DNA of 64,000 nt from Gekko japonicus (Eukaryota): positions 769,988 through 833,987 of the forward strand of contig NW_015159726.1 in assembly GCF_001447785.1 (NCBI RefSeq). The letters are read 5' to 3'. The notes under the pieces were generated by a model. The model had not been told where the DNA came from. It did no database searches and saw only the letters and a list, made by a program, of their open reading frames with translations. Below are positions 28,901-63,248 of the stretch, in pieces (the stretch's first letter is position 1; each line of letters starts with the position of its first letter). Made by a program: the position numbers and the translations under genes.

Positions 28901-31900
28901 GAGTTTTATAAAGCGAGAGGACTCTCCAACAGTGCAGTCCTGTGCAGAGTTTTACTGCAGTCTAAGCCCACTGGTTTCAGTGGATTTAGACTGGAGTAAT
29001 TTTGTCTAGAATGGATGGCATTGCAAGTTTTCTAGGCTTCCATTTGAACACTGAGACAAGAAAGTGGCATAACGGAACATGCTAAAAAGTATACATTTTT
29101 CTTTAAGATCTTCCTTGGCTTTGTATACCAAGCTGTTTGGGGGCTAATAACCCCCAAAGAAATCTCTCTTTTCTAATTTAGAGCAGTGCTTGCCTTCAGA
29201 GAAGAGTGAGACAAAACGTCACCTAGCATGTAGAGTTACATTGCAGTCTCTCTCCCCACCCCTTTAGGAATGAAAAGATACATATATATATATATAGTGT
29301 CTCAGACTAATATGGATACAGGGTTGGATCCAGCCAGCTTTCCAGTTACAAAGGGAAGGAAGGATGGTTCCTTTTGACCACCAAAAAAGGCTATGCTAGG
29401 GATTCTGGGACCTGTATTGACAAAAGCCATGTGGAACGGGGGCTGTAGTAAGGAGGGGAATTCAGCAAGATAGAACAGAAGTTTGGTTGGATCCAACCCC
29501 ATGGTTTTATAACCTTGACTTTTTTGTTTTCCTTTAGCAAAAAATGGACCTATATATGATGCAGTGTGGAATCCCAGTTCCACGGAGTTCTGTGTCGTAC
29601 ATGGTTTTATGCCCGCCAAAGCAACTATCTTCAACCTAAAATGCGATCCTGTTTTTGACTTTGGAACTGGTCCTCACAACGCTGCCTACTACAGCCCGCA
29701 AGGACATATCTTAGTACTCGCTGGATTTGGAAATCTCAGTGGACAACTGGATGTGTGGGATGTTAAAAACTACAAACTGATTTCCAAACCTCAAGCCTCA
29801 GATTCCACATATTTTGCATGGTGCCCTGATGGAGAGCACATTGTAACTGCTACGTGTTCTCCTCGGCTGCGAGTTGGGAATGGGTATAAGATCTGGCATT
29901 ACACCGGGTCAGTCCTCTACAAATATGAAGTCCCGCCAAATGCAGAGCTCTGGCAAGTTGCCTGGCAGCCCTGTTTGGAGGGAACATTTCCAGTAAAGGC
30001 AGTCAAGTACAACACCGTTCCAAGCAAAGTGCCGAATGATGAGCCAAAGGCAGCCCAAGCTTATAGGCCCCCAGCTTTGAGGAACAAACCTGACACGAGT
30101 TCTAAACTTGTAAGTAGCAGTCGTTTCCATTGTAGGATATGTTATTACAAACTGTTGTCTCAGTTTTGGGAAAGGGTAAAGGAGAAAGTACTGGATCTGT
30201 TTTTCATATCAGCCTTATGGAGAATAGCAAACTAATTTTAAATTTTCACCTGTTTTATATTCTTTTCAGACCATGCATTAAAAACAGAGTTTTCTTTTCC
30301 TTTCCCTCTCTTCCCCACAGCTGCATTTTTGACACAAAGACGTTTGGGTACCTGAAAAATCTGATATGTCATTTAACATAATGAACACGTGCATAAGGTT
30401 GACATATGGAATGCAGCTAGTGGGCTAATTTTTCTACTTGTTTAGCTGTTAGCCTCATCTCTTGGGATGAGGCAAGTTGCAAACCTTCATTTAAAACAAA
30501 GCAAAACATGCTGGCAATATAAGAGGGCTTGCTAGCTGAGTATCAGAACAAAAAAAAATTCTGTCACCTACTGTCACTGAACAATAAGAGTCATAGGGTT
30601 GGATCCCGGCTAAACTGGCATTTCTACTGATACCCCCTCCCACTGCAGACTTCCTGGTGGGTATCCTTCTCCCCAGGGAGCAGCATTTTGTGGTGATCAT
30701 TGGATTGTAGTAGGAGTTGGGGAGGCAATAAAGCTCTCTTCTGCAGATGAAAAATTTAGTCTGGATCCAGCCTGTAGCTTGGACTCTCTCACTCGCTCTC
30801 TCAAATCTAGGTTACCGTTTCTCTGTATTTTGAGAATGAGCCAGGGGGAGCAATGCCCACTAACTGACCACCACCACCCCCCCCGGATATTTTGAAATTG
30901 TTCTATGATGATTTCCGTACTTCTGCTGACTCTTCTGTCCCTCTTCATCTCTATGTCCATTCTCCACCTTCATATTTCATGGGAACCTGTTCCATGATTA
31001 AGTGGGGCATACCTGTTGTTCTGCAGAACAGGAATGGGTCACAGGAGAGATGCCCAATATCACAAGAGAATTCTTGTGATGAACTCTTTTCTCCTGAGGA
31101 TTATACAGTTATGCACCTGTCCCTGATGAGTTCGGTCTGAAAGATGATGTCTTAAAGTGGAAAAGACGCTCCCCCCCCCCCTTACTAATAACACCTTAAA
31201 GACCTGAGACATGCAACCAAAAGAAGAGTTAAACCGTGTTGATAGAAGGCTTGATCACAAGTTACGTTTTATTCCTTGGTTATGGTTCTAAGAGCTAATC
31301 ACGCAAATTATTGGTTACAAAGAGCTGCAAGCCTACCTATAAACAGTATTAACAGGAGACTGCCATGGGAAGCATAAAATATAGAATGGGGTATCAGTCA
31401 TAGTCAAACATATTTTGAGAGGTTCTTTTAACTATTTAAGGTACAGTGCATCAAAAGAAAGCCATAGGAACATGCATGCAGACTTACAAGCATATGCTGC
31501 TTCTCCCATGGGGTGCCCTGACTGCAGTGCAGCATGTTGAGTATTGGACCCCAGAGTCCTCGGTTGATCTGTTAGGTTTCTGCCTGTCGACACCATCACT
31601 GAAGTCCTTCCAGAAGAAAATATAATGTCCCTGTGCTACTTCTAGTACAGTATGGGATAAATGACGCCTACCTAGGCATAAATACAGAATGAGAAAGCTT
31701 GCAGATACAATGCAAAAGCAGACACTTGGAGGTTACAAAGTTGCTGAGGCCGAATCTCAGCTGCAGTAACGGGAGTGGTTCTTTATACCCTTCTGTTGTG
31801 CAATGCTGTGTTTCCCCCCCTTATGTGTTGTTCTGGCTAACTTAGTCTCTGATAGTCGTATCTTGCACAGCCGCATCCCTAATTGCAGGGCTGTTTTTCC

Positions 31901-34900: not shown

Positions 34901-37575
34901 TTAAAGAAAACAAAAACAAAATGCAGCCATGTGGATCTGCAAACTTGATTATCATGCAAAAGAGGTGCATAACCACAGAATCATAGAGTTAGAAGGCCAT
35001 CTAGTCCAACCCCTTCTCAATGAGGATCAGCCTCGAGCATCCCTGACAAGCATTTGTCCAGCCGCTGCTTAAAGACTGCCAGTGAGGGGGAGATCACCCT
35101 CCCCCAGGCAGCTAATTCCACTGTTGAACAATTCTTTACTTTTAAAAAGCTTTTCCTAATATCCAGCTGGTACCTTCCCGCCCTTAATTTAGACCCATTA
35201 TTGAGAGCCCTATCCTGTGCTGCCAACAGGAACAGCTCCCTGCCCTTTCAAATACTTAGAGAGAGCAGTCATGTCCACCCTCAGCTTCCTCTTCTCTAGA
35301 CTGAACATTCCCAAGTCCCTTGGCCTTTCCGCATAGGGCTTGGTCTCCAGGCCCCAGATCATCCTCGTCGCTCTCCTTGCACCCGCTCCATTCTGTCCAA
35401 TTTCTGCCTACTGGCCACTTCTTCAATTGGATGTGCACTCAGCTACTTTTCTCATATTGGTAAAGATCTAGGGACCTTGTATCTTCTCCTTTGTGGGTGG
35501 GAAAGAAGCTGCAAGGATGATGTTGATTGGAAAACAGCCTGGGCAGAGGAGTTAAGCTTGCATACCTTCTGTTCACCACCACTATCTCCATCAGATTCAG
35601 AAGCCTCTGCTGCTGCTTTTCTCTTAGTTTTAATTTTCTTATCAGGAAATAATCGACAGGTAAATAACAGGTACACCCAGCATCAAGCTGTAAGCTTCCT
35701 CCCCCCCCCCCCCCACCCACCCGGGGCCTGGAACTTGGACCAGGAACGCCATGTCACATGGTGTGTAGAAAAATATTACTACAAAGGAAGGGACAACTTG
35801 CCATAGGCCAGGCAAAACATCTGGTCCTGTTCTCATTCTTTTCTCCCAGTGGTTCAGTATGGCAGAGGCAGTATTGGCAAGAAGCAGGTTTTTAATATTT
35901 ATCATGTTATTGGTTCTATGGGAGTTCAATAGCCATTGTACAAGAAAAAGTGACATTAATCTTATTTGAATGACTTTTTAAAAACTGGGGTCTAAACCAG
36001 AACTGAAGTATAAAATGAAAGGAAAAGATGAACCAGAGTTGAAGTGAACTGAATAATGTTGGCCCACATACCCCCTCCCCAGCTTGCTGATCTGTGGAGT
36101 GGGGCCCACAGCTTGAGGTTGGGTAGGAGCATAAGGGCATCACACAAGAATCCTTGGGGAGTGTCCTTAGAGAGCACGCTTGCTTTTTTTTACACCATGG
36201 AAAGCTTTTAAAACTTGCTGCTGCCTCTTTGTCTTGAACATGTTTGTCTTCCCCACAGAAACTAAAAGCAATTGAGCAGCTGAAAGATCAAGCAGCCACA
36301 GGCAAACAACTAGAGAAAAACCAGGTATGCCCACTAGGTTACATTAACATCAGGTTACATTAACCTGGATTACACTAGTAGATAGTTTTTTAAAGATCAT
36401 ACATTTACCCATTAGAACAGGGGTGTCAAACTCATTTGTTATGAGGGCCGGATCTGACATAAATGTCACTCTGTCAGGCCGGGCCATGTGTGCCATAAAA
36501 TGTAATGCCAGGTACTGGAGATATAAACTTTATAAAGGACACAGGCAAACCCAATTAACAATCAAAAGCAATTGATTCCTAGCAGTGAAAGTAATTGATT
36601 TATGGGTGTCAGGCTCCGTCTGTGGCCCGGGAGCTGACCTGGCCGTGGCGTCTGGCTCCCACCAGGGCAGACGGTCCTGGGAGTTGGAGGAAGTTGTTAA
36701 GGAGGAGTTTGCCGTGGGGCTTCAGGCAGGGGATGGTTTAGTCCCTCTGCCGGCGTGCGCAGGACACCTCTTGCTCCCCCCCCTCGGCTCTCCGTTTCTC
36801 TCACCTCCATTCTGTTGCACGTTTCTCCTCCCTGGCCCCTCTGCATCTCTCTCCTTTTATTCCCTCTTCTCCACTCCCAGCACTGCCTGTGTTTCCCGCC
36901 CCCTCTACTCCTAATCTGGCCCCGCCCCCGGTGATAAGAACAGACACCGTCTGGGCTCCTCACCGTGTCCACCCTTAGCTCTCCCTCTGTGACGTCCGCG
37001 CCGCTGCTTGCTGGGGCGGGGTTCCAGGGTGCACACTCCAGGGGCCGTGCTCTGCCGACGCTACTGCAACTCTCTGGGTCGCCAAAGGTTGTCTTTGGCG
37101 TCGTGGTTACCATGGTCTTTGGCCACCGGTTGCCATGGCGTCATGGTTGCTCCGCTCATCTGCTGGTTCCCGGGTGAGTTGGGCGGTTGGGGTGTCTCGG
37201 GGGGGTGGGGTATACATCCTGCGGCCACCAGATCAGGACAGTGGTGGAGCCCACAAAAGCCTCAATAAATGTATTTAATCATATGCAAACTAGGGTTTTT
37301 CCAAGGGATACCATAAAAGGGGGAGAACCTTATATTTCCATACATACCAGTTGCTTGTGGGCGGGTAAGGGCCCTGGATGGGCTGGTTCTGGCCCCTGGG
37401 CCTTATGTTTGACACCCCTGCATTAGAATGTTATTGCACTGTGCCCTTGGCTTAATTCTTTGTTATGTGCTATAAACATCTGACAGTGTCCTCTGTGTGT
37501 ATATTCTAGCTGGAGAAGATTCAGAAAGAAGCTGCCCTTCTGAAGGAGCTAGAAGATTTGGAGCTGGGCATTTAG
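13899..37575 (+). CDS. EIF2A: Eukaryotic translation initiation factor 2A, 14 coding exons, 1761 nt, 586 aa
   Basis: Exon lengths 28,70,75,119,100,83,74,145,117,572,117,129,66,66 sum to 1761 with GT-AG junctions and a continuous frame. Peptides include [58 protein letters not shown] and [11 protein letters not shown]. Confidence 0.97.
15106..15691. mobile_element. AT-rich non-autonomous hAT element
   Basis: TIR TAGAGATGTGAA / TTCACATCTCTA; TSD GTTAGAGG / GTTAGAGC; subterminal CCGGAAAA repeats. Confidence 0.85.
16699..16768 (+). CDS. EIF2A: EIF2A exon 2
   Basis: ctag|TG CGA GGA...CAA AG|gtatg; [23 protein letters not shown]. Confidence 0.95.
17480..18990. mobile_element. PIF/Harbinger-like MITE interrupted by a CR1 insertion
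   Basis: Imperfect TIR GGTCCCTGCCACACG / CGTGTGACCGGGGCC; 3-bp TSD TGA on both sides; CpG-rich arms. Confidence 0.65.
17673..18729 (+). mobile_element. Young 5'-truncated CR1-clade LINE with uninterrupted RT C-terminal ORF (17675-18523)
   Basis: [10 protein letters not shown] motif, [23 protein letters not shown]; 3' tail TCTTATGTTCTTATG. Confidence 0.95.
19776..19850 (+). CDS. EIF2A: EIF2A exon 3
   Basis: ttcag|G...GAA CA|gtcagt; [24 protein letters not shown]. Confidence 0.95.
20121..20436 (-). mobile_element. tRNA-derived Squam3-like SINE with (GGA)n/(GAA)n microsatellite tail
   Basis: Reverse complement of CAGTTTGGTGTAGTGGTTAAG...GGTTTGATTCCCCACTCC; tail at 20121-20167. Confidence 0.85.
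21236..21514 (+). mobile_element. Squam3-like SINE
   Basis: GGACTCCAATCTGGGAGAACCGG..TTGATTCCC...GGGTATAAATCCAATCTCTTCTCTTCTT. Confidence 0.85.
21690..21898 (-). mobile_element. 5S rRNA-derived SINE
   Basis: GGTCTCCCATCCAAGTACT...CCCTGCTTAGCTTC.GAGATC is the reverse complement of the 5S internal control region, joined to a non-5S body. Confidence 0.8.
22380..22498 (+). CDS. EIF2A: EIF2A exon 4
   Basis: ccag|A...ACA A|gtgagt; [39 protein letters not shown]. Confidence 0.95.
22947..23101. mobile_element. Palindromic hAT MITE (155 bp)
   Basis: 66-bp inverted arms (63/66 match) beginning TAGGGCTGCCAA; perfect 8-bp TSD CCTTTACA. Confidence 0.9.
23575..23674 (+). CDS. EIF2A: EIF2A exon 5
   Basis: gcag|CT...AAC TG|gtaagg; [32 protein letters not shown]. 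Confidence 0.95.
24153..24235 (+). CDS. EIF2A: EIF2A exon 6
   Basis: ttag|G...TTC A|gtacgc; [27 protein letters not shown]. Confidence 0.95.
25692..25765 (+). CDS. EIF2A: EIF2A exon 7
   Basis: gcag|GT...AAG|gtgcct; [24 protein letters not shown]. Confidence 0.93.
25871..26015 (+). CDS. EIF2A: EIF2A exon 8
   Basis: acag|GTG...AAC G|gtatta; [21 protein letters not shown]...[12 protein letters not shown]. Confidence 0.95.
26773..26889 (+). CDS. EIF2A: EIF2A exon 9
   Basis: atag|CC...CTA C|gtaagt; [38 protein letters not shown]. Confidence 0.95.
27590..28035 (-). mobile_element. CR1 LINE 3' fragment
   Basis: CTAGTCCAACCCCCTG...AAATACTT...CATGTCCCCCCTCAACCTCCTC; similar to 34975-35400. Confidence 0.8.
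28687..28890. mobile_element. hAT MITE, inverted relative to 9289-9491
   Basis: TIR CAATGTTCCCTCTAAG / CTTAGAGGGAACACTG. Confidence 0.85.
29320..29500. mobile_element. MITE with GGGTTGGATCC terminal inverted repeats (related copy about 30596-30775)
   Basis: GGGTTGGATCCAGCCA ... TGGTTGGATCCAACCC. Confidence 0.6.
29538..30109 (+). CDS. EIF2A: EIF2A exon 10
   Basis: ttag|CA AAA AAT GGA...AAA CTT|gtaagt; [12 protein letters not shown]...[16 protein letters not shown]. Confidence 0.97.
33430..33546 (+). CDS. EIF2A: EIF2A exon 11
   Basis: ttag|CAT...CAG|gtac; [39 protein letters not shown]. Confidence 0.95.
34277..34405 (+). CDS. EIF2A: EIF2A exon 12
   Basis: aaag|GAA...AAG|gtagg; EARAEG...[16 protein letters not shown]. 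Confidence 0.93.
34975..35400 (-). mobile_element. CR1 LINE 3' fragment
   Basis: AGAATCATAGAG..CATCTAGTCCAACCC; minus-strand ORF remnant RYQLDIRK...VFKQRLD. Confidence 0.85.
36259..36324 (+). CDS. EIF2A: EIF2A exon 13
   Basis: acag|AAA...CAG|gtatg; [22 protein letters not shown]. Confidence 0.95.
36418..37420. mobile_element. hAT (Charlie-like) non-autonomous element with GC-rich internal insert
   Basis: TIR CAGGGGTGTCAAAC / GTTTGACACCCCTG; perfect TSD CATTAGAA. Confidence 0.9.
37510..37575 (+). CDS. EIF2A: EIF2A exon 14 (terminal coding)
   Basis: ctag|CTG...ATT TAG; [21 protein letters not shown]; AATAAA signals follow at 37631, ~37785 and ~37862. Confidence 0.95.
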   Translation: MEKIQKEAALLKELEDLELGI

Positions 37576-43839: not shown

Positions 43840-44800
43840 CGTTAGAGGCGATGTCTTATGGACTGCGCCGCCACCCGCCCGCAGGTCGCGCTAAGGAAGC
43901 CGCTCAGCGCCGCTCGGCTCTGCCCTCCAGAGGCGGTTGGGGGCGTGTTTGCCGCCTGTCGCGGGAATAGGCGAAGCCTCGCGCAGGCGCACGGCGGCGG
44001 CAGCAGCAGCTCCTCGCGTGATCTCGCCCGCTGTGCCGTCAGGAGAAGGACCCACTTTCGCGACCGGCTCCTGAGGCTCTTTCCCGGCGCCGTTGGCTGG
44101 GAGGGGGAGGAGGTGGGGCCCAGGCAGGACAAGATGAAGCGGGCGCTGGCCTTGCTGCTGCTGCTGTCGGTGGGGCTGGACTGGGCCTCGGCCCAGCCGG
44201 GTGGGCTGCCGCCGGCCAAGAAGCTGCGCATGGCCTACGCCACGGGGCCGCTGCTCAAGTTCCAGATCTGGTGAGCGCGGCGGCGGGGGCGAGGGAGGGA
44301 GGAGGGAAGGAAGCTCCGCCGAGGCCTGCTGCGCTGCCCGCCCGCCCGGTCTTGCCGGTTTGGCGCCTTTCGCTTTCCCTCACGGAACCTTCCCGGCTGG
44401 CTCCTAGGGAGCACTTAGGGCCTGGAGGGGGAGCGAAATAGTAGAGGGGGGAGAGACTAGGCCCCCCCGCGAGGCGGTGGGGGCTCGGCCTGTCGCTGCC
44501 TCCAGGTGAACAGCAGGCCCTGCATTCACTCGACGGGGAAAGGGGAAGCCGTGAGGCTTGGGGGAGTCGTGCAGCACGTTGGACTTTGAACGAGCCTGTC
44601 GGCATTTTTATGTTGCCCGTCGAAGAACCTGAAGAGCGCCGTGGGTGGTCCCAGCCCTCTCTCCGTTCGCTTCACTTACACAGCAGTCCTGTGAGGTGGG
44701 CTAGGCGGAGAGACCCTTGACCTGGCCGAGTCGGCTTCCTTGCTGAGCCGGGTGTTTGAACCCCGCCCTGGTCTGCCAGCCTGTACGGCTCCTCTCACGC
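43840..44800. promoter_or_regulatory. CpG island promoter of SELENOT
   Basis: CpG-rich block spanning exon 1; NRF1-like GCGCAGGCGCA at 43981. Confidence 0.8.
44134..44270 (+). CDS. SELENOT: SELENOT exon 1
   Basis: aagATGAAG...ATC TG|gtgag; MKRALALLLLLSVGLDWASAQPGGLPPAKKLRMAYATGPLLKFQI. Confidence 0.95.
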
Positions 44801-47800
44801 TGTGCGTGAAATAAGAAAGGGGGGGAGGGTTGAAGGAAAGAATCATAGACAGTGTCGTGTCAGGAATATTGGCAGATGGGAAGGCCTTGATGATAGAACA
44901 AGTGATGGGGGGGGGGATGGTTGATGGGAGAAGAAGTATAGGCTCCTCTGTAGGAAGATACCACCTGGTAGGGAGAATAGGGACGCCAGCTTTGATAAGG
45001 TAAGGCAGCATCTGTATGGTAGGGATTTCCATGGTGGGGTGAAGTTCCATGGAGATGAGGAGGGAATGTGCAAGCCTTGAGAATTTGAGGAAGAGAGCAT
45101 GGGATGCCCCAGGTCCCAGTAGTGCGTGTTTATAGGATCATACACAGAAGGACTTAATTGTAAGAATCTGGTGATATTTTAAACTTTCTTTTATAGTGAC
45201 TAAGATAAGGTGAGTAAGATAAGGCTGGAGAGCCAGTTTGGTGTAGTGGTTAAGTGTGCGGACTCTAATCTGGGAGAACCGGGTTTGATTCCCCACTCCT
45301 CCACTTGCACCTGCTGATGTGACCTTGGGTCAGTCACAAGCTCTGGCACAGCTGTCCTTGAAAAAGAGCAGTTTGTGTCAGAGTTCTCTCAGCCCCACCC
45401 ACCTCACAGGGTGTCTGTTGTGGGGAGGGGAAGGGAAAGGAGTTTGTACGACGCCGCCGCTCTGAGACTCCAAGTGAAGGGCGGGGTATAAATCCAATCT
45501 CCTCCTCTCCTCCTTCTCCTCCTTTACTTGGTGCTGAAAACTGCACAGCGTATTGCTCTGCCACAACTGGACCTGTCAGATAGGTGTTGCTCTAACTGTT
45601 CTGCGTTTTTCATTCAGACCTGCAGTCACAAGGTTGTTGTCCTAGTCAGGGAAAGATCATGTAATTTGCACCTCTAAGTATGATAAGAAAGTTTGTATGG
45701 AATTTAGGAATGTAAGGTGTAGTTGGTGATGGATTTTCCTGAGGCATTTCTAGGTTTCCAGGGTCTTAGCTATTGCTGCAGTGTCAGAAACACTTATTTG
45801 TGATTTAATTTTGAGATATTGTACAATATGAATAAAATTATTAAATTTGTGTGGCCAAACATATTTTTGGAACCAAAGTCTAAATCTGGTTATGAATTCA
45901 GCAAAATTACCAGAGCTGTTAAAAATCTTGCCCATAAAGTGTTGCTGCTTTTCTTTAATCCAAAAGGGGTTAGCTGCGTCAGTCAATCATAACAAAATTA
46001 AAGAGGAATCCTATAGTGCCTTTAAAAACTAACAAAAAAAATTCAGCATAAGCTTTTATGAGTCAGAAATTCATAATTTCAGATGTAGTCTTCTATTAAA
46101 AAACACTCTCATGAGGAACAGCAGCTGAAATTGGAGCACTGTTTTGATTTGTGTATTTCTGATTCATGATCTTTAGAGCTTTGTAAACTTGTGACAGTGA
46201 AGCTTTTCAAATCAAGAATGTTTCCACTTACAGCTATTTTTAACAGGCATCATTGCTGCTCTTGTGTACCAATGTTACATCAGCATAGCAACACATCACA
46301 GCTGGGACCAAAGGGAAGGAAAGCTGGATACATTTTGCATTTGTCTTATAAATTCCCAATTTTGTTACTTATAGAAATCCAAGTTTTTGTTATCATTTTT
46401 TAAAAATGACTGTTTTGGTTGAAGAGGGTAACTTAAAACAACATATCGCAACAATGTGAAGGCAAAATTTGTAGAAGAAATCTTTCTAACTGGCCTACTG
46501 TTGCAGTCCTAAAGATAGTGATTTGGAAGTAAGTCTTGTTGATACTGAATACATGTTGATACATATCCACCCCCATCCATCTTTGGGCATCGGGCTGGTT
46601 CTTGTAAATAACTTCCAAGTTAGGTTCATTAACAGGCAAATAAAATGTATTTCTGTTTCAGATGGTAGATATATGTAAATGTTCTGGATGGAGTTGACTT
46701 CTTTTGTACACAGGCGTTTAAATATTTGCTAGATGCAAGTTGCAATCATATTGGGTTTTGTTAGAGGTTTGCTATTAGTGGATTTGTAGCTGTTGGATAC
46801 TGTAATATATTCCATTATTATTAGTGCATAGTTAACCAATAAGCTGCACTGTATGAGCCAGCTGCAGAAATCCACACCTTCTCAATAACTACTACAAATG
46901 GACCAAAGAAGATAGAAGGCCACTGTACACAGTAGGAGCACCCAAACACAATAGAATTGTGTACAGCATTTGAATCTCTAAAAGATATTGCTGCACGAGA
47001 GAAGACATTTTTACCTTGTTGGAAAGTTCTTCAGTATGATCCTGGCTGCTTTTAGTTTTTGCAAAGGTTAACTTGTGGGCTGATAAGATCCAAAATGCCC
47101 TTTAAAAAAAAAAAAAGTTGAGCACCATCAGTATACATGGCACTTTACAGTTTTGCATAGGCAAAAATAGACAGGTTCCTGCCCCCTAAGGAGTCTGTAA
47201 CCTAAAACAGACCATTGGGAAAATGGAGAGAGGAGGAAGAGTTGAATGTAGGTAAATCAGCATGCTTACAATTTGTTTGCAGTTGGGTTTGAGTATTAGC
47301 AATATGAGGACTCTGTGGGGAAGGATCAGTGTGGAGGAAGTACTTGAAGACAAAGGGGTGGTATCACATACTTCTTCAGTGGGAAGGGATTTTCAAGCAT
47401 AGACGATGGAAAGGAAGACTCGGAAGAGANNNNNNNNNNNNNNNNNNNNNNNNNNNNNNNNNNNNNNNNNNGCTTTATGTAAAATGTTCTTAGAATCGTT
47501 TTGATGATTGATGAGCTGAAACTAGTAGTGAGTTTAATAGTGATAAAATATTTCTGTTCAGTGTTTCCTGAGGATACAGGCGGGTGTTTGAGGAGTACAT
47601 GCGGGTTATTAGCCAGCGGTACCCAGACATCCGCATTGAAGGAGAGAACTACCTTCCTCAACCTATTTATAGGTAAGCTAATTATGTGCTAACATACAGT
47701 CGCTAGTAGTTTGGATAGATTAAAGTCTGTAACATGAGGAATTAGCTAACTTAATATCTGTGACAAGAGCTGAATTGCAGGAGCACACAGATCTGTGAAC

Positions 47801-50800
47801 TGGAGCAATAGGCCTCATGCAACCAGAGCGTGCAAACTAATAATGATGTACTATTTTTGCTGTGCCGTGACCTGGATAGTTCAGGCTAGCTCAGTCTTGT
47901 CAGATCTCAGCAATTAAGCAGGGTCAGCCCTGGCTAGTACTTGGATGGGAGGCCACCAAGGAAGTCCAGGGTTGCTGCTCAGAGGCAGGCAATGGCAAAA
48001 CCACCTCTGATTGTCTCTTGCCTTGAAATCCTTGTAGGATTGCCATAAACTGGCTACAGCTTGATGGCATTTTACACTCACTTTCTGTTGTTGTTGTGGT
48101 TACAGGATAAAAGTATCTTTCAGAATGTTCACAGTAATGTAGAATAAATGTAGAGAGCTTTTGGCATTCTAATACTTTGAAAAAATATGTTCATCTGTTG
48201 TAATATTACAGTGCTGTCTCTTTTGTTGTTGTTCAGTCGCACAGTCGAGTCCGACTCTTCGCGACCCCATGGACCAGATCACGTCTCTTGTGTAGATTTA
48301 TGTTAATCTGAACCCAGTTGATTTCGATGGGTTTTATGCCATATTATTTATGTGTAAGATTGAACTGTTTTTTAAATGTAACATCTTCAAATAGTGTTTG
48401 TTCAGAAAACTAGTGACCTCTTCAGTGATTGATGTCTTTNNNNNNNNNNNNNNNNNNNNNNNNNNNNNNNNNNNNNNNNNNNNNNNNNNNNNNNNNNNNN
48501 NNNNNNNNNNNNNNNNNNNNNNNNNNNNNNNNNNNNNNNNNNNNNNNNNNNNNNNNNNNNNNNNNNNNNNNNNNNNNNNNNNNNNNNACTTTTTCCCTTT
48601 AAAACATACTGTGTGATGTGCAGACTGTGGTGGAGCGGGCTAAGTGCATCCACTTTCCCCTTTATTATCCAGTGCCATTTTGGTGCAGTGGAGAAGCCAG
48701 AAACAACCAGTCCTTGGAACCTTCAGAGGGAGATGGGAGGGGGAAGTTGCTGTAAGAAAAGGACCATTTAACAGATGCCCTGCACAGTTGGGGTCTCTAG
48801 ACCCTCTAGCCGGCAGGTTAGAAGTATTCCTGTCTCATCATCTGTCTTCAAGGACAAGCAGGCTGGGTGTAGTGTGGTGGCCTGGCAGGGCACACACTAA
48901 TGTGTAAGCTTTCAAACTCAGTATTCCTGGGAGGGGAAAGCTGAAGGCAGCAGGAAAAGAGGGAGACCCAACATGAGATGGATTGACTCTATAAAGGAAG
49001 CCGCAACTCTCAGTTTGCAAGACCCTGAGCAAGGCTGTCAACACTAGGACATTTTGGAGGTCATTAGTTCATAGGTCGGAAGTGACTATACATGTTCCTG
49101 GGAAGAGGGACTCTTAAGGTGCAAATTGACATCTTTATGGTAAAAGCTCCAGAAAACTTAAACTAAGCTGGGAAACCAGGGAGATATTTGTCTGTCTTAG
49201 CTTTCTGGCTGACTCTCTCGGTCTTGGTAACATTGTATCGATTAGTGACACTGTTTCTCCAAGTTAAGTCTCCCCCACAACTACAATTCTATGTCGTTTA
49301 TTCCTGAACACCAAGACCTTTGTTTTTGACTGCAGGAAAGTAAGTAAAGTTCAGTTCTTTGGTATATACAAGTAGACAAAGTTATAAAAGGTTAAATATC
49401 AGGGCAGTAGTGTCTCCACGGTGTGCTGGAGTCAGGTGTAATCAGCATCTGTTATTTACATCGCAGATGGCTAACATTACCAAATATTAACAGGCCGTTC
49501 ATAATCAAATCTTTGAGTTCTCAGGGTATTTTGAATTTGCCTGGTGGGTAGTACAGAGTGGCATGGGAGTTAATCCTCTTCACAATCTAATGTGCTACCA
49601 GTGTGGATCTTCCCGACAAAACCTAAAAGGCCTTAGGGTTAAGTTCACATACATAAACCTGTAATCATAACTGTGAAAAAACAAGACCCACAAAGCCAGA
49701 TGCAGAATGTCACACATACCATCTTCACTGCATAGCTGCTCAGTTGAAGACATGCTCAGGCTGATACTTCAGCCTAACATACCTTTAACATGCTTTACTT
49801 TTTGCTGTCACTGAGAATGTGGTTCACAAGAAGGGAAAATGAAAATGGAAACCTTTCTCTTCTCTACTCGAAATGCTAATAAAACCAAAATATTTGAGAG
49901 GTGGGTGAGTATGGGTCTTGCTACTTGAAAGTTATGAGCTTTTTCTGAGCTTTTGCAAATAAGAATTTGGGTCTTGGATTTTCGTGCCCTTTCCTGCTGC
50001 TGCCAAAAAACAATGACCCCACTGGGGCTGTTGGGAGAAGTCCTGAAAGAGCAGAATGCAGTTACACTGCCGAGTGAGTAGTTTGACTGCTTTGCTGTTG
50101 AACTGGGACGGTGATCCAAAAAGCATCCTGAGTTTTAGAAATTCTGAACAATTTATTTGAAATAACTGGGGTAAGGAATGGGTTGTATGATATCCTGGAC
50201 CTGTATGTAGCTTATCTAAGGAGCTATAGCCTTGTTATGATTAGCTGAAACTTAACCGTTGACTGTGAGATCTTTGAGTGCCATGTTGCCAAGGATTGCA
50301 TCATTTTTCATCCTTGGTGTATGAGAACAAAAGCATATCTAACTGGCTTGTGTAAAGGGAGCAATACCGCTAGGGCTTAAAGCCGAACCTGTAGTGAGTC
50401 ATGTTGACAGTAGTCTGGTTGTGAATATATATTATGGGCATTTGTTTATCCACTTAGTAAGGGAGACTATATATTATAAACGGTACCTTTCTTGTAGTGT
50501 ATTTCCTGTTGGAGTGCATCTTCTGTTATGTTTTTATGATAGTAGGGCAGCTACTGAGTTCAGTTGCATAATTTGAACACAGCAGCTGAGATTAATACTC
50601 CTCACTTCTAGGTCTATGCTTGTATGATGGTTTTCTTCCTGAGCAACATGATTGAGAACCAATGTATGTCAACAGGTGCATTTGAAATAACTTTAAATGG
50701 TAAGTTTTGAACAGCTTTTTAGCCCATGAACACAGTCCTCTTGTCTGTAGGGTCTATATGTGTATGTATAGGGGGTCAAGATACATGTTACCCGGGAGGA

Positions 50801-51556
50801 AGAAGTAGCATGAGGCTTAGGCTTGTTGTGCCTCACAGCACAAAAGAATTGTTCATTATGGAAGTCATGAATGAACTCCCTTAAATGTTGACAGATAACT
50901 ACATGTGAACTAAAACCTAAACTATTAAAACATTTCTATCCCGCCTTAGCTTCTTGGACTCAAGGTGGTGAACAGTGTAGCACCCAAATTGCAAAGGCAT
51001 AAACACAATTTACCAATTTAAAAACTTTCAGACTTAATACTCCTAAAAGTACACAGGGTTGGCAGACTTACAGCCAAATCTGCTGGAAAGGTTTGCCCTC
51101 CACCCAATCCTTTCTGTAAGAGGGCTACCTTACATTCCTTGCTCAACTTGGAAAGGGAAGATCACCTTTCCAAAGGGCTGGGCTCACCACAGGAAAGGCC
51201 CAGAAAGTGTTGGTCAGCATTAAAGTTCAAAGTTTTGTGTTGAACTTTCTCCAGGAAGTGTTTTTGAATCTTTGCTTAGTAGAGATGGAAGCACTGTATC
51301 TTAGTTGAATATAGTAAAACTAAAAGCTTATAAAAGTAGTTTTGTTTTTGGGAACAGTTGGCTATGCCTGCACCATAGGAAAGCAGACAAGTTATTAAGG
51401 ATTTTCTCTTCCTTCCTGTCTTTCTCCTTAGATGTCCCAGTATGGTCTAAGTTGGAGTCTGGTCACCTTCCTTCCATGCAGCAGCTTGTTCAGATCCTTG
51501 ATAATGAAATGAAACTCAATGTGCACATGGAGCAAATACCGCATCATCGATCGTAG
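44134..51556 (+). CDS. SELENOT: Selenoprotein T (thioredoxin-like, CxxU): join(44134..44270, 47562..47672, [exon 3 in gap], 50612..50699, 51432..51556)
   Basis: Signal peptide + ATGPLLKFQIC|VSU GYRRVFEEYMRVISQRYPDIRIEGENYLPQPIY; VYACMMVFFLSNMIENQCMSTGAFEITLN; DVPVWSKLESGHLPSMQQLVQILDNEMKLNVHM. In-frame TGA at 47569-47571 and a SECIS downstream. Confidence 0.96.
45227..45522 (+). mobile_element. Squam3-like SINE (full length)
   Basis: GGAGAGCCAGTTTGGTGTAGTGGTTAAG (A box)...GGTTTGATTCCC (B box)...(CTC)n tail. Confidence 0.88.
47430..47471. other. Assembly gap (42 N)
   Basis: Run of N. Confidence 1.
47562..47672 (+). CDS. SELENOT: SELENOT exon 2 with Sec codon TGA at 47569-47571
   Basis: ttcag|T GTT TCC TGA GGA TAC...TAT AG|gtaag. 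Confidence 0.96.
47869..48076 (+). mobile_element. 5S rRNA-derived SINE
   Basis: TAAGCAGGGTCAGCCCTGGCTAGTACTTGGATGGGAG head plus GCAATGGCAAAACCACCTCTG body. Confidence 0.8.
48223..48285 (-). mobile_element. RTE/BovB-type LINE 3' end
   Basis: TTGTTGTTGTTCAGTCG...GTCCGACTCTTCGCGACCCCATGGAC. Confidence 0.7.
48440..48587. other. Assembly gap (148 N), probably containing SELENOT coding exon 3
   Basis: Run of N; the expected exon is absent from all readable sequence between exons 2 and 4. Confidence 0.9.
50612..50699 (+). CDS. SELENOT: SELENOT exon 4
   Basis: ctag|GTC TAT GCT...AAT G|gtaag. Confidence 0.95.
51432..51556 (+). CDS. SELENOT: SELENOT exon 5 (stop); exon continues to donor at 51584, 3'UTR exon starts 51954
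   Basis: ttag|AT GTC CCA...TCG TAG; ctctt|gtaagt; tttcag| acceptor at 51953. Confidence 0.95.
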
Positions 51557-51976: not shown

Positions 51977-52063
51977 GCAGCATGAACGAAATGAATGATG
52001 GCCTGTACTGAAGACAGCAAGCTGTTGGTACAGACTGGATGCTCTCCTCGCCTTCATGTTGTT
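51977..52063 (+). promoter_or_regulatory. SECIS element (type 2) of SELENOT
   Basis: AUGA core at 51995; helix II GGCCUGUACU/GGUACAGACU; unpaired AA; ministem GACAGC/GCUGUU; GA at 52038-52039; lower helix GCAGCAUGAA/UUCAUGUUGU. Confidence 0.93.
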
Positions 52064-58387: not shown

Positions 58388-58670
58388 TCATAGAATCAAA
58401 GAGTGGGAAAGAACCTCCAGGGTCATCTAGTCCAACCCCCTGCTTCCTGACCCCAAAGTGGTGATCAGCATTTCCCTGGGTGTGTAAGAAAGGGCCATGA
58501 GATCTAAGCACTGATGCAACCCTTCCTGCCCTCCCTTCTCGTGATCTGCCTAAATTAACAGAATCAGCATTGCTGTCAGATGGCCATCTAGTCTCTCTTT
58601 AAAAACTCCAAAGAAGGAGAGCCCACCACCTCCCGAGGAAGACTGTTCCACTGAGGAACCGCTCTAACAG
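58388..58670 (-). mobile_element. CR1 LINE 3' fragment
   Basis: CATAGAATC...GGTCATCTAGTCCAACCCCCTGC; minus ORF TVRAVPQWNSLPREVVGSPSLEF. Confidence 0.8.
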
Positions 58671-59587
58671 TGGGAATGCACACCGATATTCTGCCACTAT
58701 GCTTGTTCCCTCTCCTGTTCATGTGCATGTGAAGGCAGGCCAAGGGAGTGGGAGAGAAGAAGAAATGGTCTGTAGTCAACCAGAACAGATCTAGTTGCTC
58801 ACACCAGGGAGAAAACGACCCAAAAGCTTTCCAAAGGAGTCAGGGAATACTGTCAGATCCACTTCACGTTTCCAGACATCAGGCAACTTTCCTGGATTGG
58901 TGTGGTAGCCGCTTAGCTGGGGTGGGTGGGTAATGAACGATTGCAATTAAGACCTGTTTTCCTCCTGGGATCAAACAATCAGTTACTTCTCATTGACACG
59001 CTTTATATGTCGATAGCATCAACACATGGAGTCGTTTTTCTGCATGGACAAGGAAAACACCGTTTATTGCATTGACTCATTTTAGAAGCCTAATAGGAAG
59101 GGCTAGAATGTCTCTCTGCTTTGTTTGCCCAACTCCTTCCTTATCTTTATGCGTCAAAGACACTTTCAGAAATTGATTGAACAAGCCTGCCTTCCCAGCT
59201 GTTCCCCTCACCCATCTGAGCCAATGAGTTCCTTTTGCCTGGAGCCTTCAGTTGGGGGAGGACTTTGGTCTCCCATGCATCTCCAAACACATCCCTGCCA
59301 GGTGAAGAACAAAGGCTACAGGTGAAGGCTGTAATCACGGAGGGAAAAGAAATAAGGAACTGGGAGCTTCAATTATGTTGGCGACGGCTCCTGGTACAGG
59401 CAGTTTGCAGCCATTCCAGATGGTTTGACAGCAGGACCAAGCCAAAGGATTCCAGCCAAGAGATCTTTTTCTTTCTGCAGGACCTTTGGCAGTTTGCAAA
59501 CAGAACAGCATGTTTGCTTCTAGCTTGATGGCACCTCATGTAGGTACACCTTGAAGCCAATGTTCCTATCCCTGTCTCATAACAAAG

Positions 59588-60643
59588 ATGCCCAATGTTA
59601 CGTATGCGGTGCTTCATTTCCTCTTGTGCATCCTCATCCCCTCCACCAACCTGCTGGTCATCAGAGTCCTTTGGCAGCTGAGGAAGAAGAAGCCAAGCAG
59701 AAACTATATCTTCATCCTTAACTTGGCAGCTGCTGATTTACTGGTCGGTGTGATGTGCTTCGGGGAAGCACTGGATGATGCCATAGACATAGCATTGGAC
59801 AGAAACCAAACTGTTTGTCTCTTGAGGATCTGCATGAGCATTACTCCTTGCATTGGCTCCATATTGACCTTGCTCTTGGTTTCCCTGGACAGGTACTTGG
59901 CAGTGAAGCTGCCTCTTTATTACCCTACCCTCATGAGGAAGAAGCCGATCATCTTCTCTCTCGTTGTGCTGTGGAGTGTTTCCTTATTGGTGGGGAACAT
60001 GCCACTTATTTCCTCCTACCTGCAGCAGGGCAATTTCACGGGTGAGTGTGGGCTCTTGTCTGCCACCAAGAGTGACTATCTGTTCATAATCTGCTTCGGC
60101 ATCTTCATCCCTGCTTTGTTGACCCTCGTCTGTTTGCACATTTCAGTGGGAAGGATTGCCTACCTACAGCACAAGAGGATCCGGCATGCCTTCCTGCACA
60201 TGGACACCTCCTCTGCTCATTTCCGCCATTTCAAAGCACTGAGGACAGTTCTTGTTGTGATCATCTGCTTCATTCTCTTCTGGGGCCCTTATTATGTGGC
60301 AGCCATTGTGAAAGCGACCTGCAGTTCCTGCATTCTAAGTCCACTGCTGAAGGATTTACTATTCATTCTAGGAGAAACCAATTCCCTGGTCAATCCTTTC
60401 ATCTACTCACTATACAGCAAAGATATAAGAACTCAGCTTTCCAAACTGATAACGTGCAAGACCAAAGGCCAAATAAAACCATGTAGGGCTAATGACCTGG
60501 CTCGGATCCATTTCAATATGAGGGCTCAATGTAACTTAGCCTCTGGAGGAGCCACAAAACGAGATTCGTCTGGGGAGCAAGCTTCTAACTCTCCTACCTT
60601 CAAGAGTTCTTCAGACTTCAAAACAGTGTTCTCAGTATCTTGA
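59588..60643 (+). CDS. Single-exon class A GPCR, GPR119-like (glucose-dependent insulinotropic receptor-like paralogue), 351 aa
   Basis: Seven hydrophobic segments; TN in TM1, NLAAADL in TM2, C + DRY in TM3, W in TM4, FKALRTV...FWGP in TM6, CxxC in ECL3, NSLVNPFIY in TM7. Very short N-terminus as in GPR119; AATAAA at 60711. Confidence 0.92.
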   Translation: MPNVTYAVLHFLLCILIPSTNLLVIRVLWQLRKKKPSRNYIFILNLAAADLLVGVMCFGEALDDAIDIALDRNQTVCLLRICMSITPCIGSILTLLLVSLDRYLAVKLPLYYPTLMRKKPIIFSLVVLWSVSLLVGNMPLISSYLQQGNFTGECGLLSATKSDYLFIICFGIFIPALLTLVCLHISVGRIAYLQHKRIRHAFLHMDTSSAHFRHFKALRTVLVVIICFILFWGPYYVAAIVKATCSSCILSPLLKDLLFILGETNSLVNPFIYSLYSKDIRTQLSKLITCKTKGQIKPCRANDLARIHFNMRAQCNLASGGATKRDSSGEQASNSPTFKSSSDFKTVFSVS

Positions 60644-61212
60644 TCTGTACTTGATTAAACAAAAACCTGGCCTTAAGAGAGGCGAAGAGGTTTCTTGTGC
60701 ATTGGCAATCAATAAAGAGGTAATGTAGGAAACGTTCCCTTCTGCAATCAGGGTTTGGAACCAAGATTTGTGTTGCCTCTCTCATAAGTTGATCTCCTGG
60801 ATAGACAATGATCTGGTGATCCAAAGATCACCATAAGTGGGTTAACTAATATGTTATATATATATTTACAGCTAGCCAGAGTGTTAAACTACAACTACAA
60901 ATGCCATGGATATCATATATTTCTTGGTCATCCAGGGAATGGTTTATATGCGCTATTCTGAAACCCGTAAATGGGATAATGTCTTGGAAGTGGCATATTG
61001 GGCAGAATGCTTTGAATTACCAAATAAAGGGCTAAAAACAATCAATTTTTTAAAAGTCCTCTTTGTTTCTAGCAAGCAACTGAGTCTGATGTTCTAACAC
61101 TCCCTCTTTATACTACAGCAGGGGTGTGGGTTGAAATCAATGTCTTGTTTCATCAAGTTTTGCCTGACTGAGAGTTTAGAGAAGGACAAATGCCTGCCTA
61201 CTTTAATTGACA

Positions 61213-62699: not shown

Positions 62700-63248
62700 A
62701 GGTATCAGCTGTCGTAGTTCTTCATGGCCTTGGAGCCTCATATCTTGCAAGACCACTTTTTAACCTGTGTCCTGCCACGACAGCTTCACTCATCTGAGCA
62801 GGGCTTTCTGCACATGCCACCCTACAGGTGGGCATGGTCAACAACTGCCTGTACACAGGCCTTCCCTGTAATGGCCCCTGCCTTGTGGAATGGCCCGCCT
62901 GAGGAGGTCAGGAAGGTTCCCACGCTCCTGACATTTTGCAACCTATGTAAAACGGAATTATTCAGGGCATTTTTGTAATAAAACCAGAGGTACACTGTAA
63001 GAGGTTGGTTCAGTAAAATGTACTATATGCCTACTGATGTAATTATGTTTCTGCATTCTTTAACATATCATGTACATTGTTCACCTATGCTTTGTTCAGA
63101 TGACAGCTCCATTTCAAAATTTCTGCAAGTCCTAGTGCTATTACATTGCTTATTAGATGTATAATCCTATTGATTGCATTGATTTTACATTGCATAATCT
63201 GCTTTGAGTCTCAGTGAGAAAGGCGGTCTATAAATAACATAAATAAAA
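62700..63248 (+). mobile_element. L2-type LINE 3' end
   Basis: AFPVMAPALWNGPPEEVR...CKTELF remnant; TGAGTCTCAGTGAGAAAGGCGG.CTATAAAT..AAATAAA tail. Confidence 0.7.

Follow-up and report, generated by a model that had tools for sequence, protein, structure and literature searches.

GPR119 is a much-studied drug target in diabetes, and structures of the receptor with lipids as well as with synthetic agonists have been solved. A second clade of its family was named GPR119B in one sentence of a 2019 Scientific Reports survey, with the remark 'found in gar/sauropsids(5)' (PMC6504862), and its members are listed in RefSeq as "glucose-dependent insulinotropic receptor-like"; functional or structural work on GPR119B was not found in a full-text literature search. 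Here we analyse a stretch of 64,000 nucleotides from Gekko japonicus (assembly GCF_001447785.1, contig NW_015159726.1, positions 769,988 to 833,987 of the forward strand; hereafter the window, meaning the whole stretch), which contains an open reading frame (ORF) for a receptor of this family. In the reading that we favour, with a probability of roughly 0.85, this ORF is the gecko orthologue of GPR119B and encodes a working Gs-type receptor with a rebuilt orthosteric site, whose ligand would differ from that of GPR119. A preliminary description of this DNA had implied that the gene was new, which overstated the case, as the clade is annotated in RefSeq and named in the survey. The value of the locus lies in a pocket signature and a distribution rather than in its discovery, the existence of the gene being already known. 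Beyond the survey sentence in PMC6504862, GPR119B is present in amphibians, lungfish, bichir, sturgeon and bowfin and carries a clade-wide pocket signature, and both this signature and the wider distribution appear to be undescribed in the literature searched. With more than 400 million years of conservation behind it, the sister receptor GPR119B (clade B below, with true GPR119 as clade A) offers a natural comparison for the evolution of the GPR119 pocket.

The receptor gene and its constraint

The ORF list of the window contains an uninterrupted frame for a rhodopsin-type receptor of 351 amino acids plus stop, opening with an ATG:

59588-60643, + strand: single-exon coding sequence of GPR119B, assigned by the ORF, Pfam 7tm_1, the match to human GPR119 and the placement in clade B of maximum-likelihood (ML) trees
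59552-59554, + strand: in-frame TGA, 36 nucleotides 5' of the ATG

The start codon is fixed by the upstream TGA, and gecko orthologues of 351 amino acids align over 100% of the window protein. The intact seven-helix frame of 351 residues that had been claimed for this DNA was borne out: it begins with an ATG, has no internal stop and matches Pfam 7tm_1 with an E-value of 4.1e-37 over residues 21-273. When compared by HMMER with the sequences of the PDB, the protein found its best solved relative in human GPR119 (1.9e-39, 139 bits), followed at a gap of 47 bits by the histamine H2 receptor as the next family (92 bits, 4e-25). The alignment pairs GLLTDQ in transmembrane helix 2 (TM2) of human GPR119 with GEALDD in the gecko protein, and LERYLWLLGVG in TM7 with LKDLLFILGET; both proteins have the motifs CxLR, DRYLA.K, FKALRTV and NSL.NP.IY as well as a CxxC in extracellular loop 3 (ECL3). 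It thereby reproduces the pairings in TM2 and TM7, and the family hallmarks, that had earlier been proposed by eye. The features that define a G-protein-coupled receptor of class A, namely 7tm_1, Asp 2.50, a cysteine pair between 3.25 and ECL2, the D/ERY motif, Trp 6.48-x-Pro and NPxxY, are all found in the window protein, and the corresponding residues (D50, C77/C154, D101-R102-Y103, W232-G-P234 and N269-P270-x-x-Y273) are invariant or near-invariant. An AlphaFold2 model built from a 59-sequence alignment has seven helices, a helix 8 and a disordered tail from residue 294 onwards (predicted local distance difference test, pLDDT, 79; predicted TM-score, pTM, 0.75), and its five top fold matches are all human GPR119, with TM-scores of 0.86-0.89.

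The same frame allows one to ask whether the gene might be a silent or decaying copy in this gecko, with the open frame as a leftover. This is very improbable: the 351 codons are free of stops, the protein keeps all 76 of the 76 columns that are conserved at a level of at least 95% in clade B, its terminal branch in ML trees is very short (0.03-0.05), and it is 88-93% identical to the proteins of other geckos. Protein-level identity over the same species pairs, which we used as a stand-in for the ratio of nonsynonymous to synonymous substitution rates, is usually equal or higher for B than for GPR119; between two geckos it amounts to 83% for B versus 74.5% for GPR119, and from tetrapods to bichir to 53-62% versus 44-49%. 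B evolves no faster than GPR119. Judged by its sequence, the window gene encodes a class A receptor of the GPR119 family and is both intact and under constraint.

Two sister clades and their distribution

A word-index search returned clear orthologues of the window protein, followed by a sharp fall to 33-35% identity for squamate proteins named GPR119. The orthologues are distributed as follows:

Geckos: 83-93% identity to the window protein
Other squamates: about 70%
Turtles and crocodilians: about 62%
Birds: about 60%
Frogs, salamanders and caecilians: 50-56%
Lungfish, bichir, sturgeon, gar and bowfin: orthologue present

With one squamate GPR119 protein as the query, true GPR119 was retrieved from mammals, birds, turtles, tuatara, squamates, salamanders, a caecilian, sturgeon, bichir and teleosts. 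Separate clade A genes were found in the geckos Paroedura, Eublepharis, Euleptes and Sphaerodactylus (including P0133 and P0139), and Paroedura, Eublepharis, Polypterus, Acipenser, Ambystoma and other species have both genes, which within one species are only 30-34% identical. In ML trees computed with IQ-TREE (LG+C20 PMSF; sets of 59 and 43 rows), the sequences fall into two sister clades, A with true GPR119 (support 100/99*) and B with the window protein (93/98 in the 59-row set, 100/100* in the 43-row set). The outgroups comprised amine receptors and invertebrate relatives, without sphingosine 1-phosphate (S1P), lysophosphatidic acid (LPA), cannabinoid, melanocortin and adenosine receptors; against the amine receptors, A and B together are supported at 100/99* to 100/100*. 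The window protein is the sister of the Paroedura sequence (100/96* to 100/99*), and each of the two clades contains ray-finned fish as well as tetrapods.

These trees decide the question of whether the receptor is simply the 1:1 orthologue of mammalian GPR119, moved to a place next to SELENOT. Frog, gharial and skink entries of RefSeq do name the B gene plainly glucose-dependent insulinotropic receptor; mammalian GPR119, however, lies in clade A together with GPR119 of squamates, birds, salamanders and fish (100/99*), related geckos have a separate clade A gene, and the identity of A and B within a species is as low as stated above. We regard the moved-orthologue explanation as refuted by the clade A/B trees and the gecko clade A genes, and leave it practically no weight. 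The paralogue status that had been proposed for the gene is upheld by the same two observations, separate supported clades and the presence of both genes in the same species.

A full HMMER scan of 1.84 billion cluster representatives yielded only nine clusters with E-values of 1e-30 or lower, and these are B, A, teleost A and one starfish GPR119-like protein. A mammalian copy of B was found neither among 5.8 billion protein clusters nor in the full HMMER scan, in line with the loss in mammals that the preliminary description had suggested. Likewise, neither the word-index search nor the full scan revealed a B protein of teleosts, sharks or lampreys. Two sets of candidates were rejected: the teleost hits P0238-P0240, which outscore tetrapod GPR119, have the pocket states of clade A and fall into it, and P0083 (52% identical), considered as a shark B gene, nests with birds in the tree. 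Bichir, sturgeon, gar and bowfin have B (P0072, P0074, P0079, P0082), and all teleost sequences found are A-type (P0228-P0240), which suggests that B was lost in the teleost stem, parallel to its apparent loss in mammals.

GPR119-like proteins of starfish, amphioxus and mussel (P0241, P0387, P0247, P0243, P0244) are placed just outside A+B and group with the vertebrate clades against the amine receptors; the GPR119 family seems to be older than vertebrates. Because these invertebrate relatives lie outside A+B and both clades span ray-finned fish and tetrapods, the placement dates the A/B duplication to after the split from amphioxus and before the ancestor of bony vertebrates. Shark or lamprey sequences that would narrow this date were not found in our searches. 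The timing fits an origin in the first or second round of whole-genome duplication (1R or 2R) without proving either, and a paralogon between Xq26 and 3q25 (MBNL, RAP2, ZIC and others) may link GPR119 to the SELENOT region.

The frog genes deserve separate mention. Those named plainly 'glucose-dependent insulinotropic receptor' in RefSeq are B-type (e.g. P0036, P0038, P0040 and P0045-P0049, with P0052-P0054, P0059, P0066 and P0068 as further members of the frog set), and no frog A-type sequence was present among the 120 best GPR119 hits, while salamanders and a caecilian have both genes. Frogs may have kept only B, and Xenopus 'gpr119' is therefore not an orthologue of mammalian GPR119. Since the frog gene is B-type and no A-type was seen, results obtained on frog gpr119 should not be read across to mammalian GPR119. 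A further case of naming concerns a partial protein of Tauraco erythrolophus (P0080), which is 56% identical to the window protein (E 9e-84): its automatic name, '5-hydroxytryptamine receptor 7-like', is misleading, as the protein is a receptor of the B type.

The ligand pocket of clade B

Pocket residues were compared over 117 clade A and 81 clade B sequences, in a Ballesteros-Weinstein numbering that agrees with two structure papers on human GPR119 (L61 = 2.60, Q65 = 2.64, M82 = 3.29, E261 = 7.35, R262 = 7.36, W265 = 7.39). The states at the positions that matter here are:

2.57: clade A Ile/Val; clade B Cys 81/81
2.60: clade A Leu/Ile/Val/Met 116/117; clade B Glu 69, Asp 10 of 81
3.28: Arg in both, clade A 105/117, clade B 75/81
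3.32: clade A Val/Ile; clade B Ser 40, Thr 30
3.37: clade A Ala; clade B Ile
5.47: clade A Gly; clade B Ile/Val
6.51: clade A Phe 116/117; clade B Tyr 81/81
7.35: clade A Glu 113/117; clade B Lys 57, Arg 14 of 81
7.36: clade A variable (Arg 47, Asn 29, His 14, Lys 13); clade B Asp 72/81
7.39: clade A Trp 117/117; clade B Phe 74/81
7.43: clade A Val 58, Leu 55; clade B Glu 78/81
ECL2 (human F157): clade A Phe 113/117; clade B Leu 70/81

In the gecko gene, the charged residues of this set are encoded at:

59765-59767, + strand: GAA, Glu60 (2.60), a buried acid specific to clade B
59825-59827, + strand: AGG, Arg80 (3.28), kept in both clades and in invertebrate relatives
60350-60355, + strand: AAG GAT, Lys255-Asp256 (7.35, 7.36), with the charges reversed relative to human Glu261-Arg262
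60374-60376, + strand: GAA, Glu263 (7.43), a buried acid specific to clade B

All nine signature residues of clade B, Cys 2.57, Glu 2.60, Cys 3.36, Ile 3.37, Tyr 6.51, Lys 7.35, Asp 7.36, Phe 7.39 and Glu 7.43, are found in the window protein; each occurs in 57 to 81 of the 81 B sequences. The substitutions in TM2 and TM7 that had been noticed in this one gene are clade-wide, although two details of the preliminary description need correction. The upper pocket of B is indeed more acidic overall, with an average of 4.7 acids at seven positions versus 2.4 in A and a net charge of -2.8 versus -1.0, but acidity at 2.64 is nothing special, as 57 of the 117 clade A sequences have Glu there. The swap of Glu-Arg to Lys-Asp holds throughout B on the side of Lys/Arg and Asp, but clade A does not generally have Arg at 7.36. 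In invertebrate relatives the corresponding residues are Phe 7.43, Val/Leu 7.39, Gln/Gly 7.35, Phe 6.51 and Ile 3.29, so that B seems to have acquired Glu 7.43, Lys 7.35 and Tyr 6.51, and A seems to have acquired Trp 7.39, Glu 7.35 and Met 3.29. Arg 3.28 is present in all five invertebrate GPR119-like sequences, and Glu 2.60 occurs outside B, among these relatives, only in the starfish protein.

In human GPR119, L61 (2.60) contacts agonists and the head group of oleoylethanolamide (OEA), as seen in the structure papers. Alanine at F157, W265, F241, M82 or R262 abolishes activation of the human receptor, and E261A weakens it (PMC9671963); at these six positions the window protein has L156, F259, Y235, I81, D256 and K255, respectively, and such states hold across clade B. 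At the 16 positions of the activation cavity and gate that PMC9671963 lists, the side chains are together 186 cubic angstroms larger in B than in A, and at seven extracellular-cavity positions they are 113 cubic angstroms smaller. These data bear on the possibility that B keeps the ligands of GPR119, OEA-type amides and lysophosphatidylcholine (LPC), and differs mainly in where it is expressed. We consider this unlikely. It would agree with the lower pocket, which is entirely hydrophobic, with Arg 3.28, Trp 6.48, Phe 5.48, Leu 3.41 and both disulfide pairs, which A and B have in common, and with GPR119 being the closest fold; yet all six residues needed for full activation of human GPR119 differ across clade B, the tunnel is bulkier by the volume given above, as Ile/Val takes the place of Gly 5.47 and Ile that of Ala 3.37, and two buried glutamates have been added. 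Given the replacement of the six activation residues, the narrower acyl tunnel and the acidic upper pocket, the ligand of GPR119B is probably not that of GPR119.

On the side of the G protein, the picture is more conservative. Human GPR119 contacts Gs through K35, F111, H195, I199 and W282, according to the literature, and clade B has K/R, L, Q/H, I/L and Y at these positions; B has also retained the DRY motif, NPxxY and, at the base of TM6, K-A-x-R-T. From these residues we infer that GPR119B couples to Gs. In B, the Gs-facing side changes only conservatively, while the ligand gate appears rebuilt and the upper pocket acidic.

Taken together, GPR119B would have arisen by duplication in early vertebrates as the sister of the lipid-amide and lysolipid sensor GPR119, and would survive in sauropsids, amphibians, lungfish and non-teleost ray-finned fish as a cell-surface class A receptor that is most likely working and presumably signals through Gs like GPR119. 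The aromatic gate of GPR119, formed by a Phe in ECL2, Trp 7.39 and Phe 6.51, would have given way to Leu, Phe and Tyr, bulkier side chains would partly fill the deep acyl-chain tunnel, and the upper pocket would have gained the near-invariant glutamates 2.60 and 7.43, as well as Asp 7.36, beside the retained Arg 3.28. Our best guess for the ligand is a shorter molecule with a positive or zwitterionic head group, which Glu 2.60 and Glu 7.43 could hold, with Arg 3.28 taking an anionic part.

Whether GPR119B has gone further and become a receptor for a cationic ligand, be it a small amine, a basic peptide or a lipid that is zwitterionic or bears an amine, with the counter-ion role of Asp 3.32 in classical amine receptors taken over by Glu 7.43 and Glu 2.60, is a tentative thought to which we give little weight. 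An alignment of 127 nearest class A representatives (MAFFT in fast mode; the anchors D 2.50 and C 3.25 aligned in 127/127 and W 6.48 in 125) contains no acid at 7.43 in any of the 127, and the aminergic Asp 3.32, present in 73 of them, is absent from B. If the idea were true, cation recognition would have been invented independently inside the lipid-receptor branch, and a signalling system of birds, reptiles, amphibians and basal fishes would apparently have been lost in mammals and teleosts.

It is equally conceivable, if doubtful, that the new acids are structural, with Glu 7.43 paired to Arg 3.28 and Lys 7.35 to Asp 2.64 or Asp 7.36, or with a metal ion held by the acids, which would set the constitutive activity of the receptor or form an ion-dependent site. 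A pair of Glu 7.43 and Arg 3.28 would be a charge-reversed echo of the 3.28/7.43 pair of rhodopsin, and in MC4R a metal ion is held by Glu 2.60. Arg 3.28 is conserved in B beside the new Glu 7.43 and Glu 2.60, and GPR119 is called constitutively active in the title of a reference cited by PMC9671963. Against such a role, clade A and the invertebrate relatives, without an acid at 7.43, conserve Arg 3.28 just as well; a residue that is kept where 7.43 is not acidic does not need Glu 7.43 as a partner.

Several points weigh against a working GPR119B with a rebuilt site and a ligand of its own. Ligand or signalling assays on GPR119B were not found in the full-text literature search, and how Glu 7.43 is oriented and how far it lies from Arg 3.28 is presumed from general knowledge of class A receptors. 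Among the sequencing runs that contain this stretch (contig runs with up to 0.97 of its words), none is registered as RNA; three raw RNA-seq runs of the species were listed. Given a lower pocket that has remained hydrophobic throughout and the presence of Arg 3.28, the ligand may be a lipid, and the acids could pair internally with Arg 3.28 and Lys 7.35 rather than with a ligand. For experiments, GPR119B represents a clean deorphanisation target in chicken and Xenopus.

Neighbouring genes and known receptor systems

The remaining features of the window, outside the receptor ORF, are:

29564-30235, + strand: exon of EIF2A (Pfam eIF2A, 2.3e-51)
44128-51556, + strand: SELENOT coding span, upstream of the receptor on the same strand, with the first and last coding exons readable in ORFs and searched separately
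47430-47471 and 48440-48587: two runs of N within the SELENOT span
51994-52045, + strand: element resembling a selenocysteine insertion sequence (SECIS) in the 3' untranslated region of SELENOT (RF00031, SECIS_1, 24.3 bits, below the gathering score of 35)
59466-59480, + strand: pyrimidine tract and AG, candidate splice acceptor for a 5' untranslated exon (motif only)
60654: ATTAAA, a second poly(A)-type motif after the receptor stop (motif only)
60711-60716, + strand: AATAAA poly(A) signal motif, 68 nucleotides past the stop (motif only)

The splice acceptor ending at 59480 and the AATAAA 68 nucleotides after the stop, which had both been claimed for the receptor gene, are present, as motifs. 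The first coding exon of SELENOT extends from about 44128 to 44274 and the last ends at 51556 (+), in exons that we take to be those of SELENOT by their presumed likeness to the human protein. The last exon has a weak match to Rdx (E 0.0078), and the SECIS-like element (E 0.16) is the sole hit in 3.85 kb and lies 440 nucleotides past the SELENOT stop on the correct strand; it is probably the real SECIS of this gene. The readable sequence of the window did not yield the exon that carries the selenocysteine codon; this exon may lie under the runs of N. Tool support for the identity of SELENOT is weak but consistent. The ATG of the receptor is located 8.0 kb downstream of the SELENOT stop on the same strand, giving the gene order EIF2A, SELENOT, GPR119B, of which the first two presumably agree with human 3q25. 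Three short ORFs (58588-58779, -; 35017-35226, -; 62724-62978, +) have in common peptide motifs such as '...WNSLP.EV...PSL..FK..L...' and resemble copies of an interspersed repeat widespread in squamate genomes; one such copy lies 0.8 kb 5' of the receptor start.

Among described systems, GPR119B, the 'glucose-dependent insulinotropic receptor-like' of RefSeq, belongs to the same gene family as the window protein, which nests among its entries in the tree, is 88-89% identical to the RefSeq B entries of Paroedura picta and Eublepharis macularius, and carries every signature of the clade. There is no essential difference, the window gene being that of a further gecko. Human GPR119, for which structures with Gs and LPC, OEA, AR231453 or MBX-2982 exist (e.g. 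7XZ5, 7WCM), is the best match in both sequence and fold. Like it, the window protein has a tiny N-terminus, the disulfide between Cys 3.25 and ECL2, the CxxC of ECL3, Arg 3.28 and a single coding exon, as well as DRY, the K-A-x-R-T base of TM6, NPxxY and conservative residues at the Gs interface. Unlike it, the gecko receptor belongs to a separate clade with 30-34% identity, has Glu at 2.60 and 7.43 and bulkier tunnel residues, and follows clade B in exchanging F157, W265, F241, M82, E261 and R262 of the human protein for L, F, Y, I/L, K/R and D.

The aminergic receptors (HRH2, 5-hydroxytryptamine and adrenergic receptors) are the next-best sequence matches, with E-values from 1e-25 to 1e-21, and have the general class A scaffold in common with the window protein. 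They are characterized by Asp 3.32 (73/127 of the near representatives) and Tyr 7.43 (76/127), where the window protein has Ser84 and Glu263; amine binding by B, if any, would use a different counter-ion position. The combination of charges in B also has parallels in receptors for other ligands. In S1P and LPA receptors, Arg 3.28 serves to bind the phosphate and a nearby acid the amine, and MC4R uses Glu 2.60 together with Asp 3.25 and Asp 3.29 for calcium and for the Arg of its ligand; S1P, LPA and melanocortin receptors belong to the same MECA branch. GPR119 itself is grouped under one heading with MC1-5R in PMC6504862. B combines the Arg 3.28 of the former with the Glu 2.60 of the latter. 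Unlike the S1P receptors and MC4R, however, B has Cys 3.25 with its disulfide and Ile 3.29, so that it possesses neither the Glu 3.29 of the S1P type nor the acid triad of MC4R.

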